Assembly: GCA_937625935.1 (NCBI GenBank)
Contig: OW569356.1
Span: 248,001 to 312,000 of the forward strand
Length of the DNA stretch: 64,000 nucleotides
Source of the DNA: Tetramitus jugosus
Taxonomy: Eukaryota; Protista; Heterolobosea
Direction of reading: 5' to 3'
The first letter of the stretch is position 1; each line of letters opens with the position of its first letter. The notes under the pieces are model-generated. The model did no database searches. It saw only the letters and a program-made list of their open reading frames with translations, and was not told the origin of the DNA. This document shows, one piece after another, positions 32,971 to 54,410 of the stretch. The position numbers and the translations under genes were made by a program.

Positions 32971-35900
32971 ATGAACATGAGTAGCACTGCATTGCGACCC
33001 AACAATAACAACAATAACAGTCATCACCCCAGTCGGAATCAATTCTCCCATTCACTGCCCCGAATCATTACTCCCAACAACACCAATAGCTCTCCACCAT
33101 CATCCAGCACAGTGACTAGTGCTGCTTCTTCCTCCTCTGTTCCCACACCTCCCACCACTCCCACCACCTCTCATCAAATGATCAACACCACTCCCACCAA
33201 CACTCAACAACAAACACAACAACAACAACACATTATCAACATGTGCAACAGTGGTAAATACAAACCTAACCCTGCCCTCATTCCACACATTGTCTCTCTC
33301 CTCACCAACTTTCAAGAGGCACTCAAGAAAAAGGCTCAGGGTCAATCAGAGCTCTATGACAAGATGAATCAAAATTTTAACAAACTACCACCCAGTCAAT
33401 TAATCTTGGCATTCAAGGCATTGAGTCTTTGTGCTGGATTGTTGACTCCTGAACATCATCAATCCTTTATTGCCATTTTGTTGCGTCAGAGTGAAGAAGC
33501 CATTTATTTTCAACGTGATGCAGACATTGTTCACTCGTATATTGACTTTTTGTCTGCCATGTTCACTTATTGCCCCACTTATTTTTCATCCTTTTTGGGC
33601 TTTTGCGTCAATATGCTGAAACCAATGGATTTGTTGCGATTTCAACAATTCAAGGCCATGGTCATGAGTTCACAAATTGCAACCACTGGTAGTGTAGCAA
33701 GTATGACCTATGGTGGTGGTGGTGCATCTTCTTCTTCTACTCAACAACAACAACAACAACAGCAGCAGATTCAAGCACTGAGACCAGAAGTACTCCAACA
33801 ATTGGAAGAACTCAAGTTTCACAATGTACAACTCGTACTGCAACACTTGTCTGTTGGAAGACATGCCACTCTATTCCAAAAATCAATTATTGCACTGTTG
33901 GGTGATCATTATCCACATCATTATAATCCCCTGCGGTTTCACAAGTACTATGTGTTGAATCTGTTGCAACTGTCTCAGTATTTGCCCGATCGATTCTTTT
34001 CTCAAATCTTTCGATTGATTATTGATCGAATGATTGCCATGGATGCTGAGATTAAACCAGGATTAGAAGATGCCACAACCACAGCAACAGCTACCACACA
34101 AAATAACAACAATACAGCCATGATGATGATGATTAACAATGAAGAGTCATCACAACAACAACAACAGAACTCAACAGCAAACATGACGAGTGCTCAATTG
34201 TTGTTTGATATGGAGTTAGATGCCAGTCTCATGGATCCTTCAGCTGATGAACACTTGTTGCAAGTGTACATGGCTGAAAAATTGGACACTGTCATGCTCA
34301 TTTTGTTTGAGTACATTCATGCCTGCTCTACCAACCCAACCAAGATTCAACGAGTGTTTGACACTATGATGCAAATGTTTTCATCCTTTGTGGCCAACAC
34401 GTATCAGTTGCACTCGTTGCAATTCCTCATGTTTTACATTTGTAGCTTCAATGTCAAGTTTGTTCATCGATTTATTCAATATTTGTTGACCAAGGTGTTG
34501 GACAAATCACAGAATGTCGATGTGAGAAAGTGCTGTGCTGCCTACATTTCTGGTTTTGTATCACGTGCCAATTACATGACTGCTGAATCAGTGGTGGAAG
34601 CATTGGAGAGACAAGTCATTTGGCTCGAGCAGTACATTCAAATGTTTGAAAAGACGGTGACATCAACGTTTCTCGATATTCACACCCATGCCATCTTCTA
34701 CTCTGTATGTCAAGGAGTGTTCTATGTCTTGTGCTACAAGATTTATCCATTGATGCAGAGTGAACAGGGACGTCAGTTCTTGCACAATTCAGTGTTTGAG
34801 AAGATTGTGTATTCGCGGTTCAATCCATTCAAGGTACGTTTATTTTTTGTATTCCTTTTTTTTTAATGGAATCAATCATGTGATTGATTTGTTGTTGTTG
34901 TTCGATTGGTGACTAAACATTCTTTCCTTGTATTTGTGTCCGCTCGTTGCTCGCTCATATGCTTCAATTGAACAATCATGATAATGATTGTCATTGATGA
35001 ATTCATTTGATCAAATTTATGATGTTGCATTCAATAATTAATTTATTGATTGTACTTCGATTGTGTTCAATGTGTATTGGATAATCACTTGTTCATAATC
35101 ACTAACATGACAACAACAACATTGATCATCATTGGTGTGTGATGATGATTCTATGATTCTGTTGTACATGTGTGCATGTCCAATAAATTGTTTGATCATC
35201 ATTTCCATGCATGATGTTGACAAACAAAAACCATACAATCTAATGATTGTTGATGCTATTTGGGTTTCATTCATTCGACTCGTGTGCCTTGTGTGTGTCT
35301 GTGAATACTTTGATCTATTGTCATTGTATCAAAATAATATTATGACTTGTTGCCATGATGATGATGACGTGTGCATGTGGTATTATGAAAATAATATACA
35401 ATGAACATATACACAACAACATCCGTACGATAGATTATTGCCATGGATGTTGTGCAAGAGGTTGTCAGTGCATTTAGACACTATTCGCTCCATGACTTTA
35501 CTCAGCTCCTTATCAACAATAGAGACTTGGTCGTTGTCAAGTCCAAATCCACAGTCAACTACCTGGAGAACAACTTTTTCCCATTTGATCCTTATCTGTT
35601 GAGACAATCTCAATCATTTATCAACCCATTGTATCAAAAGTGGGAAGGTGGTTATGATTTGAGTTACAATAATCTTTACAATAATCCACCGTCAAGGAGT
35701 CGATCGCGGTCCATTCGCTCTACAACAAGTCTCAGCAGCAGTGATGATGGCATGTATGATGAAGATGGAGCAGAGGCCTTCTCCTATGAGGACAACCTCG
35801 TTGGATCCAATCACTACAACTCGTCCATGGACCGCGCAGGTCTCTTTTTCCAAGCATCGGAATCTACGTCGACCTCTACCACCAAGCAACAACCGAACAA

Positions 35901-36285
35901 GAAGACGACGTCGTCATTACGGAAACGTCAGATGCTAGATGACGATGATGACGATGACGAAGAAGAGGAAGAGAGCGTAGAAGATGAAAAGATTGATGAC
36001 GATGATGACGATGTGAACTTTGATGACGATGATGACGATGAAGATGAAAACTTGGAGGAAGATGACAATGATGTGTTCTCAAGTGACGAAGGAGAGAATG
36101 ATTTGCATTATCATGAAGACGATGATGTTGAGATTGGAAGCTACAATGACTCCAATCGATTCATTATGATACCTGGAGTGAACAAGTCTCGAAAGAATTC
36201 AAGTGTCATGCGAAGAAGTAGCTTTATGGGCAGTCCTGCTTCATTTGATGAGATGCAACATCCTTATGGATGGCCAAACATGTAA
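32971..36285 (+). CDS. RRN3: RNA polymerase I initiation factor RRN3/TIF-IA; exons 32971-34833 and 35434-36285
   Basis: IIDRMIAMDAEI, AEKLD, QFLMFYICS, AAYISGFVSRA, FYSVCQGVFYVLCY, NPFK|IIAMDVV, FFPFDPYLL, acidic tail. Confidence 0.9.
34834..35433 (+). other. Spliceosomal intron (600 nt) in RRN3, no internal AG
   Basis: AAG|GTACGT donor. The first downstream AG is at 35432-35433 and gives an in-frame phase-0 join. Confidence 0.88.
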
Positions 36286-36642
36286 ACATGTTATCCGGAA
36301 CAAAAGCATGCTTTTTGTTTATTTCTCTTCATGCAGCCATGAAGATGGTGCAGCACACATCTGTTTCCGTCTAGTGGCCAATCTGCGTGTATGTGTGTGT
36401 GGTACCAACCAATGCAACAGATATTGTGTAGATGTCTGTCTCATTCCCTTTGCATGTCAGGACATTGCATCAGGTTCCACCAATGCTCCGCTTTCTCTCG
36501 AAATAAAATTCTTTTCAAACGTAATTCAGCGACCGAACGAACCTTCATGCTGCGTTATTTTGTGAGGAAAAGATCGACAGTCGTCGGAGAGATCAACAAC
36601 AACAACACATTGAGATCAAAATCATTTACTGCTACGACGAAT

Positions 36643-37335
36643 ATGCCTGCTATTAAAGCCATCATCTGTCCCAGTCTCCTCTCAAGTGACTTTGCACAAT
36701 TAGCTTCCGAGTGCAACAAGATTTTGGAGCAAGGAGCCGATTGGTTGCACATGGATGTCATGGACGGCCATTTCGTTCCTAATTTGACCATGGGACCACC
36801 TGTGATCAAGAGTGTGCGATCTCACACGAGTGGATTCATGGACTGTCATCTCATGATCACCGATCCCATCAAATACGCACCAGAGTTTGTCAAGGCAGGT
36901 GCCGACAACATTACTGTTCATTGGGAAGTGTTCTCCAGTGCAGATCAAGTCGCATCATTTGTCAAGTCATTTGATGACTCCAAGTGCAAAGTATCGATTG
37001 CACTGAAGCCAAAGACAATGGCCGATGAATTGGTTCACTTGATTCAAAATGACCCACAATTTGCTCAAAAGTTGTTCATGGTTCTCGTCATGACTGTTGA
37101 ACCAGGTTTCGGTGGACAATCCTTTATGCCAGAGCCATTGGTCAAGGTGGAACAGTTGAGAAGTGTGAAGCCCGATCTCAACATTCAAGTCGACGGTGGA
37201 ATTTCAATGAACACTGTAGAGCAAGCAGCACAGAAGGGAGCCAACGTAATTGTGGCCGGAAGTGCAATCTTCAACGCCCAGGACAGAGCAGCTTACATGG
37301 AAGGCCTGAGAACAAAGGTGAATCAATTCTTCTAA
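36643..37335 (+). CDS. RPE: Ribulose-phosphate 3-epimerase
   Basis: ICPSLLSSDF, LHMDVMDGHFVPNLT, DCHLM, VMTVEPGFGGQSF, IQVDGG, GANVIVAGSA. True start is MPAIKA. Confidence 0.96.
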   Translation: MPAIKAIICPSLLSSDFAQLASECNKILEQGADWLHMDVMDGHFVPNLTMGPPVIKSVRSHTSGFMDCHLMITDPIKYAPEFVKAGADNITVHWEVFSSADQVASFVKSFDDSKCKVSIALKPKTMADELVHLIQNDPQFAQKLFMVLVMTVEPGFGGQSFMPEPLVKVEQLRSVKPDLNIQVDGGISMNTVEQAAQKGANVIVAGSAIFNAQDRAAYMEGLRTKVNQFF

Positions 37336-42798: not shown

Positions 42799-43673
42799 AT
42801 GGGCGCCAAACAATCAAAAACCACTTATTATTACTTTGGTGATTGTCAGCAACAACAACAGCAGCAGCAACACTCATCATCATCGACACTTGCTCTCGCC
42901 AATGTCAACATGGATGAAAGGGTGAAGATTTTGTTGTTGGGAACAGGTGAGGGAGGAAAGGCAACGATATTCAAGGTTTGTTCTTACTTGTTGTTGTTGT
43001 TGTTTTTTTAATTTTCCAATATGGAACATTTCACTGACACCAACCAACCAACCGAACCAACAAATGAAATACAAAAAACCAAATGATCATTTTTTTTCCC
43101 TCATACACACATACACACACAGCAAATGATTCATCAATATGGCACAAAGAGAAAGAGAGACAGGACAAGTGACCAAGAAGAAGACAACTTTCTCAATTCA
43201 TATCAGAGTCTAGAAGTGCGTCGATCCTTCATACCCATCATCCATCGAAACTGCATACTCGCCATGTACAATCTCCTCCAAGGTGCTCTCCATGTCTTTC
43301 ACCTGCCCCTAGACATGACACCCAATTCTCCGACTAGGAATGCAGTGGACAGCATTGCTCTGGAGAGGGATCATGCCATTAGTTTTGAAGATTGGGCACT
43401 GTCTCAAACCATTGGTCGCATGATACAATTCCTATGGAATCACTGTCCAGAGATTCAAGAGGCATACAATAGGAGAAATGAACTGGAATTGGAGTACATG
43501 GACAGTGCGAGGTATTGGTTCACTGAGATTGATCGATTGATTGAGCCGTCCTATGTGCCAAAGATTGATGACATTATGCGCATGAGGGTCAAGACGACCG
43601 GTATCGTCGAAACAGAGTTGTTCTTGCCTATTCGAGTCAGAAGAAAACATCATCAACAACATCAATTGCAATT

Positions 43674-48318: not shown

Positions 48319-49689
48319 TTAGTTGGGAGTTGCTGGAGAAGTTGCGACCACTCCATACTCATCTCCATCCTCATCCACACCCAGAGTATAGCTCGTGCTT
48401 GGCTCGTTATTTTCATTGCTTACATTCTCAGAAACGTCAAGTAGGTCATTGTTGTTCTCAGATGAAGCTGGAGTAAATTGGAAGTAGTTGTCAACTGGTT
48501 GTTCTTCTTCTTCTTGTTCACCAGATGTAGCGGCTGAAGGTGGTGCGTCTGTGGACGAGGATCCTTGTTGCGCATTCTCCAGAGTCTCTTCTCCCTTCAA
48601 TTGAGTGCTCTCAGTCTTGACGTCGCTTGCAAATGAGAACCATGAGGTCTTGATTGCGGTCCATGCACCTTGTCCTGCAGTGTACAGTCCTTCCTTGGCT
48701 GCATTAGTCGCTGCAATTCCCTGCTTCACAGTCTCGTTCTCCCACACTTGAGAATTGTTAATCCTTTCCTTCATTTCACCCACTTTTTCCTTTGTAGTGT
48801 GAAGCACAGGTGCAGTGACTTGTGCAGTCTTCTCTCTGGCTGCACCCAACATTGGTTGTAGCTTTTGAGTAGTGGACTCCCATGTCATCTTTGTAGTGCT
48901 GACAATGGGTTGTGTGGACTCTGCAATCTGTTGACGCAAGTCCTTTGTCTGTTCGTCCAACTCTTTTGACTTTTCCCTCATTTCGTCCAGTGCTTGCTGA
49001 CTCTTGACATATCCCATGGCAATCAGTGAAATGGCCTTGTCATATGCACTTTGCTTCTCCTGTAAATGTTCCAAATATGACTGTTTGCTACTGTTGCTAC
49101 TGTTGCGATTGGTGTGTTGACTGCTGCTGCTGGAACCATGTCCAATAAATTCACGATAGGATACAACACTGATTGTCTGATCATTCAAAATGGCTTGATC
49201 TATCATGAGGTCAGATCAAATGGAAATCAAATGAAAATCAAACAGAATGGTGGGTTATCGTGGTGATCACGTCGTGTCAGTCAATATACATCATCATCAT
49301 CATTTGATAATAATAATAGTGTGTGAAGAAGACAAAAAAAAATGAGACGCCACACATAGCACACACATACTCAACAATACAGCAGTAGAAAAGGCTGCTT
49401 CATCTTCCAACACGACAACAGCAAACAACTGTTCTCTCTGATTCTGATTCAAAATAATTTTCTCGACACCGCCGCAAAAGGTGAAGAATTCGTTGAGTTG
49501 CTTAATGGATACATCGTCACTCAAGTCATACACAATGACAGCACAGTTCAATTGATGTGGTGTCAAGATGTGAAGACCAGCGTTTCTAATTGCTTCTTGA
49601 GTTAATACAAATGGTTGTCTCATGGTTGGTGGTTCATGACTGTTGCTGGCAGAGGATGTAGCAGCTGATGACGATGATGATGGCATCAT
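48319..49689 (-). CDS. RRM-domain protein (Vip1/BPA1-like); exons 49371-49689 and 48319-49199
   Basis: LNEFFTFCGGVEKI..AVV..EDEAAFSTAVLL|NQAILNDQTISV, then AMGYVKSQQAL. Confidence 0.75.
49200..49370 (-). other. Spliceosomal intron (171 nt) in RRM gene
   Basis: GTATGT donor; the first AG gives in-frame AVLLNQAIL. Confidence 0.85.
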
Positions 49690-53194: not shown

Positions 53195-54410
53195 TTAATT
53201 TTGAACTCTCTTAATTGTCTTAAAGTCAGCCAATGCTTCATCAGCATAACCGCTTGGCTTAGCGTGTTTCTCATTGATACTGGTGTCTTTTGTGTAACCC
53301 TTGGTCTTCATGTCGACCCAGTTGGTTTGACCGAAGACAGATGAGCCAATGTCCTCAAGGATAGTGACATCCTCAGAGTCTTCTTCTCCAGAGGCGGAAG
53401 CGGAGCTCTTTGCAGCCAGTCTAACAACTTCGTTAACCAAGGCACCAACAGCGTCATAAATTTCGTGTGGTTGTGGTGCTCTTGCCATATAAGCAGGAGT
53501 AGATACGATTAGGTTAGTTTCGTCAACATGAATGGCGTCAACATCCAATTGAACAGCAGTAGATCCACAAGCAGTAACACAATCGATTGCTTGCTTATCT
53601 TCCTTTCCAACGGTGACTTGGCAACCTTCACGATTTGCGTTGCTCAAAACTTTGGCGACAAGAACTGGAGCAATGCAGATAGCACCAATTGGCTTCTTAG
53701 CATCAATGAAATCCTTAATGACACGTTCAGTTTCGGCTTCAATCTTAAAGTTCTATAAATTGGTATTTCCATTCATAACGAGACATCGTGTGAGTAAAGT
53801 GTAATGAATTTTTGTGTGAACAAGTGTGGATGGATGCACACAAAATGGGCAGCAAAATAAAAGAAACATACGGTTGAGTCCTCAGCGTAGTTGCTCAAGT
53901 TCTTTGCAACACCAAATCCACCAGGGATGATCAAAGCATGATAAGCATCAGCCTTCAAAGTGTTCAACTTTCTGACTGGTACTCTAGAAATACGGGATGA
54001 CTCAGCTGCCAAATCTCTCACTTCATTCTTCTCAACAGTTTTGGTGGCGTGATCGTATGTTTCTTCTTGGTTTCCATCAGGAGCAAAACACATAGTTTTG
54101 TATCCGCTTCTAGACAAATGGATCAAAGTGGAAACAGCTTCAGTGATTTCAGTTCCGTCCAAATAACCACATCCGTGCAAGAGAACAGCAACTGTTGGTT
54201 TGTTATCACCAGAGGTGGATGCAGCAGCCTACAAACACACAGACAATCAGTTTTTTATTCAAACATAAAAATATTTCAAAAAACTCAACAATGAGTGTAA
54301 TAACGTACATAGTATCTATTTTGGAAGGTAGTTGGTGCAGCGTATTGGCCTTGCTTCAAGGCAAAAGATTTTGGAGCACGAACAACGGAGGATGCAAATG
54401 AGCGGAACAT
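53195..54410 (-). CDS. ElbB/ES1/GATD3-like DJ-1-family glyoxalase, mitochondrial; exons 54309-54410, 53872-54228, 53195-53752
   Basis: Presequence-like MFRSFASSVVRAPK; VAVLLHGCGYLDGTEITEAV, IPGGFGVAKNLS, KPIGAICIAP, VSTPAYM. Confidence 0.9.
53753..54308 (-). other. Two introns in ElbB-like gene (54229-54308, 53753-53871)
   Basis: GTACGT...TAG (80 nt) and GTATGT...TAG (119 nt); both are phase-0 in-frame joins. Confidence 0.88.

Follow-up and report, generated by a model that had tools for sequence, protein, structure and literature searches.

In the soil amoeba Tetramitus jugosus, the gene for RRN3 (TIF-IA), a transcription factor of central importance for rRNA synthesis, has an intron to consider: this intron of 600 nt carries no AG dinucleotide before that of its own acceptor, which raises the question of how such a gap is maintained and what it reveals about the way the acceptor is found. 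The window analysed here is a 64,000-nt stretch (G000:C13:248001-312000) of an assembly of 56 contigs and 26,350,207 bases. Features of the locus are listed in Table 1.

The RRN3 gene and its intron

A genome search found one copy of RRN3 in T. jugosus. Homology was searched one exon at a time for the RRN3 and CapZ-beta gene models, and RRN3 of Naegleria gruberi aligns with Tetramitus exon 2 from the first residue of that exon. The junction proposed in the earlier note, 34833/35434, is confirmed by an exact 600-nt GT..AG skip in three RNA runs, X3, X7 and X9, whereas the DNA run X5 shows no 600-nt skip at this intron. Run X3 belongs to the genome's own study and was taken as RNA because poly(A) is present and intergenic depth is absent; X7 is an oligo-dT run and X9 a soil metatranscriptome. 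A wrong gene model is ruled out by these RNA junctions together with the homology of each exon.

Table 1. Features of the T. jugosus RRN3 locus (window coordinates) and the hairpin found in related introns
Feature	Position	Strand	Remarks
RRN3 exon 1	32971..34833	+	621 codons, ends ...FNPFK; Pfam PF05327 positions 12-476, E 1e-63
RRN3 exon 2	35434..36285	+	Starts IIAMDV..., contains FFPFDPY and acidic tail; Pfam RRN3 positions 522-554
RRN3 intron	34834..35433	+	Phase 0, spliceosomal, 600 nt, AG-free inside; RNA junction; position common to six relatives
Donor GTACGT	34834..34839	+	Ordinary for the genome (consensus GTAYGT; donor matrix); HMM donor score 7.2
Acceptor TAG	35431..35433	+	First AG past the donor; no pyrimidine tract (45% Y in last 20 nt)
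In-frame stop on retention	34864..34866	+	ORF 32971-34866; 631-aa product without the conserved FFPFDPY segment
Alternative early branch candidate GATTGAT	34882..34888	+	+54; predicted paired
Preferred branch candidate GACTAAA	34911..34917	+	A at 34916 = +83; 517 nt from acceptor; weak consensus
CACTAAC, best consensus heptamer	35100..35106	+	+272; candidate of the earlier note; predicted mostly paired
5' arm of predicted long-range stem	35062..35099	+	Pairs with 35382-35409, encloses most of the tail; pair probability >0.6
3' arm of predicted long-range stem	35382..35409	+	Partner of 35062-35099
Strongest local tail hairpin	35141..35203	+	Window z -4.6; contains AATAAA 35182-35187
Unspliced exon 1-intron contig, run X3	34804..35238	+	Depth 178 vs 359 on exon 1
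57-nt RRN3-intron hairpin	L024:4768-4840 (Acrasis kona), L023:2118-2189, L031:67-138		Undescribed

The description of a 600-nt intron without internal AG holds exactly: the sole AG is that of the acceptor at 35432-35433, against 28.9 expected from base composition. The dinucleotide GA is present at a normal count (37 against 28.9), in agreement with the earlier claims that GA is abundant and that a few dozen AGs would be expected. On both strands of the 264 kb examined (the window and a further 200 kb, taken from chromosomes 1 and 5) this intron is the longest AG-free run, the runner-up measuring 264 nt. Markov models of order 1-4 built on the organism's own intergenic DNA give a probability of 2e-15 to 2e-14 for zero AG in 590 nt. 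The most conservative background, the 0.020 AG/nt that introns of this genome show upstream of their branch motifs, predicts 11.8 AG (P = 7e-6). Chance and composition are ruled out by all of these backgrounds. A repeat or mobile insertion, the type of false positive noted by Gooding et al., is also ruled out, since only short two-copy repeats are present, the intron is single-copy in the genome and orthologues with which it cannot be aligned are AG-free too. The absence of AG is real and selected.

The intron is of the U2 type: GTACGT..TAG fits the donor consensus of the genome and is removed exactly in X3, X7 and X9. Four U2 snRNA loci in Tetramitus carry the canonical branch-pairing sequence; the conserved 21-mer used as query, which we take to be that sequence, fell within all four of the U2 loci located with Rfam. 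These loci are dispersed (G000:C29, C48, C11 and C30; 79-105 bits), and one is altered beside the branch-pairing region. U12-type introns have the donor RTATCCTT; that of the RRN3 intron is GTACGTTT, which does not fit a minor intron. A group I or II self-splicing intron does not fit either, there being no Rfam catalytic-core match in the window.

Some features of the surrounding genes may be recorded. For one enzyme encoded nearby, the top-scoring named matches come from Naegleria and Willaertia. In a relative with an 86% identical RPE (L002:2578-4492), the order GFAT, SGT1, RPE and the next gene is kept, and no RRN3 lies in the 394-nt gap between SGT1 and RPE; RRN3 has thus moved in one of the two lineages. 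The RPE ORF of the window (36391-37335, 314 aa) is probably too long, its homologues being about 230 aa, and RRN3 transcripts extend to at least 36472-36512, across the 5' part of this ORF. For A. kona, the RRN3 model at NCBI (548 aa) seems to lack part of its N terminus (L024:3100-3683); by eye, the DNA upstream of it encodes sequence resembling the N-terminal part of P0122, with an apparent frame break.

Conservation across Heterolobosea

An intron at the FNPFK codon was first revealed by two environmental homologues that end two and six residues beyond FNPFK. The orthologous intron, at the identical codon, measures 272 nt in A. kona, 308 nt in Willaertia magna and 394 nt in N. gruberi, lengths that agree with the NCBI gene models. 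In environmental heteroloboseans it measures 372 nt (L023), 231 nt (L025 and the overlapping L031) and 356 nt (L029). In all six relatives the reading frame continues into the following exon, and the residues expected there are present. Introns nearby in Naegleria and Willaertia are mostly 43-108 nt, and those of A. kona are reported to measure 9-95 bp (PMC11589745), so that the length of the RRN3 intron is exceptional in each lineage.

The tails of the seven introns together contain no AG in 2,211 nt, against 98 expected, with GA at normal frequency. AG exclusion zones before the acceptor (AGEZs, taken as at least 100 nt) span 598 nt in Tetramitus and 229-370 nt in the six orthologues, and the relatives' introns are AG-free from about +27 to +45 onward. 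Only 25-80 nt remain upstream of the zone, and the sole internal AGs in the seven introns, those of N. gruberi at +4 and +26, lie there and place the boundary of exclusion near the 5' end. Since the introns cannot be aligned with one another except for one element, each lineage has maintained the absence of AG independently. The k-mers TGTGAA and AAACATT occur in six of the seven but are too short and too scattered to be trusted.

A protein tree, midpoint-rooted for drawing only, groups Tetramitus, the Acrasis-like trio (A. kona, L023 and L025) and Naegleria/Willaertia in one clade (98/98); L029 falls outside it, within a group (100/98) that includes Percolomonas. The intron position itself seems older than Heterolobosea, because RRN3 genes outside this group are also interrupted there, by short, uninformative introns. 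Two outgroup introns at the same position (L033, 187 nt; L035, 121 nt) are AG-free, but no more than 4-5 AGs are expected in them and their sister introns are AG-poor too.

Ordinary introns of the genome

Control introns were predicted with an HMM that uses an AG-neutral intron model, trained on the window and the 200 kb from chromosomes 1 and 5. The 32 confident predictions, drawn from 1% of the genome, are enriched in CTAAC and reach a median length of 84 nt. The median distance of the branch motif is 59 nt (27-163) to the donor and 34 nt (14-77) to the acceptor. Upstream of the motif 30 AGs occur; more than 10 nt downstream there are 5, against 21 expected. In a predicted intron of 197 nt, AGs are skipped at +50, +80, +122 and +158 before a branch motif AGCTAAC at +163, and a predicted 128-nt intron of a thiolase-like gene skips AGs at +87 and +94. 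As these two introns pass over AGs far from the donor, AG exclusion in the predicted introns tracks the branch motif rather than the donor.

This result bears on the mechanism suggested in the earlier note, in which the spliceosome takes whichever AG comes first once a minimal distance from the donor is passed. The skipped AGs rule this out as a genome-wide rule. The idea survives in a weaker form, in that intron AG falls with distance from the donor; freedom from AG is no rule for the whole genome, since the predicted introns usually contain AGs upstream of their branch motifs. Nor was a loss of splicing factors found among those searched for: SF1, U2AF65, Slu7 and Prp18 are all encoded, as are Cactin and Sde2, and loss of any of these or of U2 is ruled out at the level of presence.

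The early-branch, long-tail layout is not confined to RRN3. The CapZ-beta intron (L016:856-1109 = G000:C5:330856-331109), between exons matching Pfam positions 2-51 and 54-236, is 254 nt long and AG-free, with GACTAAC and a pyrimidine tract at +68. The first intron of a G-alpha/F-box gene (window 42976-43122, + strand; exon 1 matches Pfam G-alpha positions 3-39) is 147 nt long and AG-free; its CACTGAC lies at +62 and leaves a tail of 85 nt. At default length settings the HMM missed the RRN3 and CapZ-beta introns alike. Two further AG-free introns are predicted on the - strand, at 49200-49370 (171 nt) and 53753-53871 (119 nt), with branch motifs at +94 and +81.

The RRN3 intron could be the extreme case of a lineage-wide geometry without special regulation, in which the spliceosomes of Heterolobosea prefer a short donor-to-branch span and long introns grow in the tail, which has to remain AG-free. 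The frequency of AG declines away from the donor, from 0.028 per nt (+6 to +60) through 0.011 and 0.006 to 0 beyond +170, which indicates that extra length tends to fall after the branch point; both sampled introns longer than 200 nt are AG-free, and branch-to-acceptor distances are long (the median and upper limit given above). Against this stand the 197-nt intron, with its four AGs before a late motif, and the failure of geometry to account for one intron being long in seven lineages or for the conserved hairpin described below. As a complete explanation it is unlikely; it is compatible, as mechanistic background, with a specifically maintained early branch and scanned tail in RRN3.

Branch-point candidates

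Five relatives carry early motifs: TACTAAC at +29 (W. magna) and +43 (L029), CACTAAC at +34 (L025), CATTAAC at +37 (A. kona) and CATTAAT at +38 (L023). Pyrimidine-rich sequence follows the early motif in five of the six relatives. The last 70 nt of the seven introns hold no branch candidate scoring above 4 of 6. These motifs, with the AG-free tails behind them, favour an early branch point and long scanning, which was one of the options raised in the earlier note, and it is from them that we infer the branch positions.

Early candidates are weak in Tetramitus (4 of 6 pairs with U2) and in N. gruberi (3.5 of 6). GACTAAA, which overlaps TGGTGAC (+79), is mostly unpaired in the predicted structure and has a pyrimidine tract behind it (about 34919-34935), an arrangement similar to that of GACTAAC in CapZ-beta. 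The heptamer CACTAAC does lie where the earlier note placed it, about 330 nt upstream of the acceptor, but it is probably not the main branch point. Branching there would leave about 5 AGs expected in the preceding 260 nt (probability of none, 0.006); CAA repeats rather than a pyrimidine tract follow it, it is predicted to be paired, and the motifs of the orthologues lie at +29 to +43. From these features the Tetramitus branch would be at or before about +83, and more likely near +83 (34916) than at CACTAAC, although both +83 and +272 could serve. Positions 34890-34915 and 35096-35121 form an inverted repeat of 26 nt, 77% complementary and made up in part of GTT/CAA repeats; the early candidate and CACTAAC sit in opposite arms and could thus mask each other.

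Structure of the tail

In Tetramitus the predicted long-range stem connects +229 with +576, and the whole intron has a folding z of -2.5. The tails fold somewhat more stably than shuffled sequences in Tetramitus (z -2.3), N. gruberi (-3.5) and L029 (-2.3); the value is -1.5 in W. magna, and in the Acrasis-like trio the values are 0.1, -0.1 and +1.7. This trio has a 57-nt hairpin with a nearly invariant core, 30-70 nt upstream of the acceptor. Four-fold sites among the three are saturated (7/23, 3/26 and 8/27), and the hairpin is regarded as conserved because it has been kept despite this. Its pairing is maintained in 95% of cells, and two pairs change on both sides; with three sequences only, the covariation is not significant (65/500 shuffles). 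The hairpin has no Rfam match, and its covariance model gave no hit in the window, in the rest of the Tetramitus genome, or in Naegleria, Willaertia and L029.

Genes of ribosome biogenesis are frequent hosts of snoRNAs, and a hairpin of this kind could mean that a stable non-coding RNA (like a snoRNA or of another kind) resides in the tail and is set free once splicing is complete, with AG exclusion following from the early branch. The near-invariance of the core amid saturated synonymous sites is what such a product would predict. Yet the RRN3 intron has no Rfam match at gathering score to any known non-coding RNA; CTGA (box D) is absent from five of the seven introns, that of Tetramitus included, which argues against a snoRNA host; no element is common to all seven; and no free intron contig appears in the oligo-dT run, a library that would miss small RNA. 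We regard a hosted RNA as improbable.

RNA evidence on retention

The unspliced contig of run X3 halts at 35238 behind an A-rich tract, with zero depth beyond; this may reflect retention, internal priming, intronic polyadenylation or a filtering gap. In X9, unspliced contigs reach 35411 at about a third of the spliced depth, whereas the oligo-dT run X7 contains no unspliced or intronic RRN3 contig. The unspliced contigs hint at variable splicing, contig depth being a poor measure and the stretch offering no control intron.

The abrupt end in X3 would fit an intronic poly(A) site that competes with slow splicing and yields a truncated RRN3 transcript, and AATAAA, the commonest hexamer of the genome's 3' flanks, occurs in five of the seven introns. 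The contig nevertheless has no poly(A) tail, AATAAA lies some 50 nt upstream of its end, and the A-rich tract could prime internally; moreover, the X9 contigs continue well past this point, X7 has no intronic contig, and holes between contigs prove nothing. This explanation is very improbable. A divergent spliceosome that takes the first AG past a fixed donor distance irrespective of a branch point is scarcely credible: most internal AGs of Tetramitus introns do lie within 62 nt of the donor, but AGs at +80 to +158 are skipped in the 197-nt and 128-nt introns (provided that the junctions predicted for these two hold), the position of the enriched CTAAC motif predicts the onset of AG exclusion, the branch-pairing sequence of U2 is canonical and the tested splicing factors are all present.

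Proposed mechanism

We consider it likely that the RRN3 intron is a U2-type intron with a branch point near the donor and a long, scanned, AG-free tail, which may be regulatory. Step 1 of splicing would produce a small lariat, with a loop of about 30-45 nt in most relatives and about 80 nt in Tetramitus. In step 2 the first downstream AG would be taken, across a tail of 200-500 nt. A new AG in the tail would then act as a false acceptor, in a gene that is present once and is needed for rRNA synthesis, and would be purged. The layout would be older than the split of Tetramitus, Acrasis and Naegleria, with the tail held at 3-8 times ordinary intron length, most likely for RNA structure that governs the efficiency of removal. 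A retained intron places a stop codon 10 codons in, so splicing would set the level of RRN3 and the activity of RNA polymerase I.

That splicing of this intron is regulatory is speculative, and about as likely as not. A more far-reaching proposal, which we put forward only tentatively and think rather less probable, is an ancient splicing switch on RNA polymerase I, in which the folded tail, with its conserved hairpin in the Acrasis clade, gates RRN3 splicing according to growth state or a ribosome-biogenesis factor. Long-range AG scanning would then be the default of the lineage, as Heterolobosea would routinely lengthen introns in the branch-to-acceptor tail.

Comparison with known systems

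Most of what is known of distant branch points comes from vertebrate exons under regulation. Mammalian examples include PTB exon 11, alpha-tropomyosin, alpha-actinin and GABBR1 exon 23, and AG exclusion zones measure 381 nt in human PTB, 590 nt in Fugu PTB and 1126 of 1132 nt in human PTPRS (Gooding et al., 2006; PMC1431707). With zones of 381-1126 nt on record, the size of the RRN3 zone is not in itself new. The RRN3 introns resemble these in that a long stretch ahead of the acceptor is free of AG, in the use of the first AG downstream of the predicted branch point and in an exclusion conserved without alignable sequence, and the sizes overlap. A candidate branch motif with a pyrimidine tract, as found where the vertebrate zones begin, is clear in five relatives and weak in Tetramitus and N. 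gruberi. The RRN3 introns differ in that the host is an intron-poor protist with introns of 60-100 nt, RRN3 is a single-intron gene without a cassette or mutually exclusive exon, the zone spans nearly the whole intron in every lineage, and no link with PTB is known. Conservation extends over several heterolobosean families, compared with human, mouse and fish for the vertebrate introns.

In Schizosaccharomyces pombe, branchpoint-distant 3' splice sites require Sde2, Cay1/Cactin and Tls1, and about 40 of 5,250 introns have a spacing of at least 30 nt (Anil et al., 2022; PMC9508853). By its candidate branch points, the RRN3 intron resembles this set in a long branch-to-acceptor spacing, with predicted structure between in part of the lineages, and Tetramitus has Sde2 and Cactin genes. 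The spacing is 195-515 nt in RRN3, by the candidate branch points, as opposed to tens of nucleotides in S. pombe and a median of 34 nt in ordinary Tetramitus introns, and structure in the RRN3 tail is not universal, z being near 0 or positive in the Acrasis-like trio. In Saccharomyces cerevisiae, the VMA10 and COF1 introns have structured branch-to-acceptor segments, and in RRN3, as there, folding may in effect bring the acceptor closer. Whereas AGs are hidden in stems in VMA10 and COF1, in RRN3 not even the predicted stems contain any, a point in favour of linear scanning.

Our literature search returned no paper on a whole-intron layout of this kind in Discoba, at one RRN3 position in several heterolobosean families, and none on splicing-level control of rRNA synthesis. 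Discoba lie far from animals and fungi, and the intron is shared by Tetramitus, Acrasis, Naegleria, Willaertia and a more distant heterolobosean. A distant branch point at one RRN3 codon in Heterolobosea would mean that long-range scanning in search of a 3' splice site works in Discoba too. Gene predictors and branch-point tools that search near the acceptor will misread introns of this type. The RRN3 tail, of 200-500 nt, offers a natural substrate for distinguishing scanning from structure-assisted docking in step 2, and Naegleria can be grown. For the biology of these organisms, the intron points to possible control of rRNA synthesis at the level of splicing.
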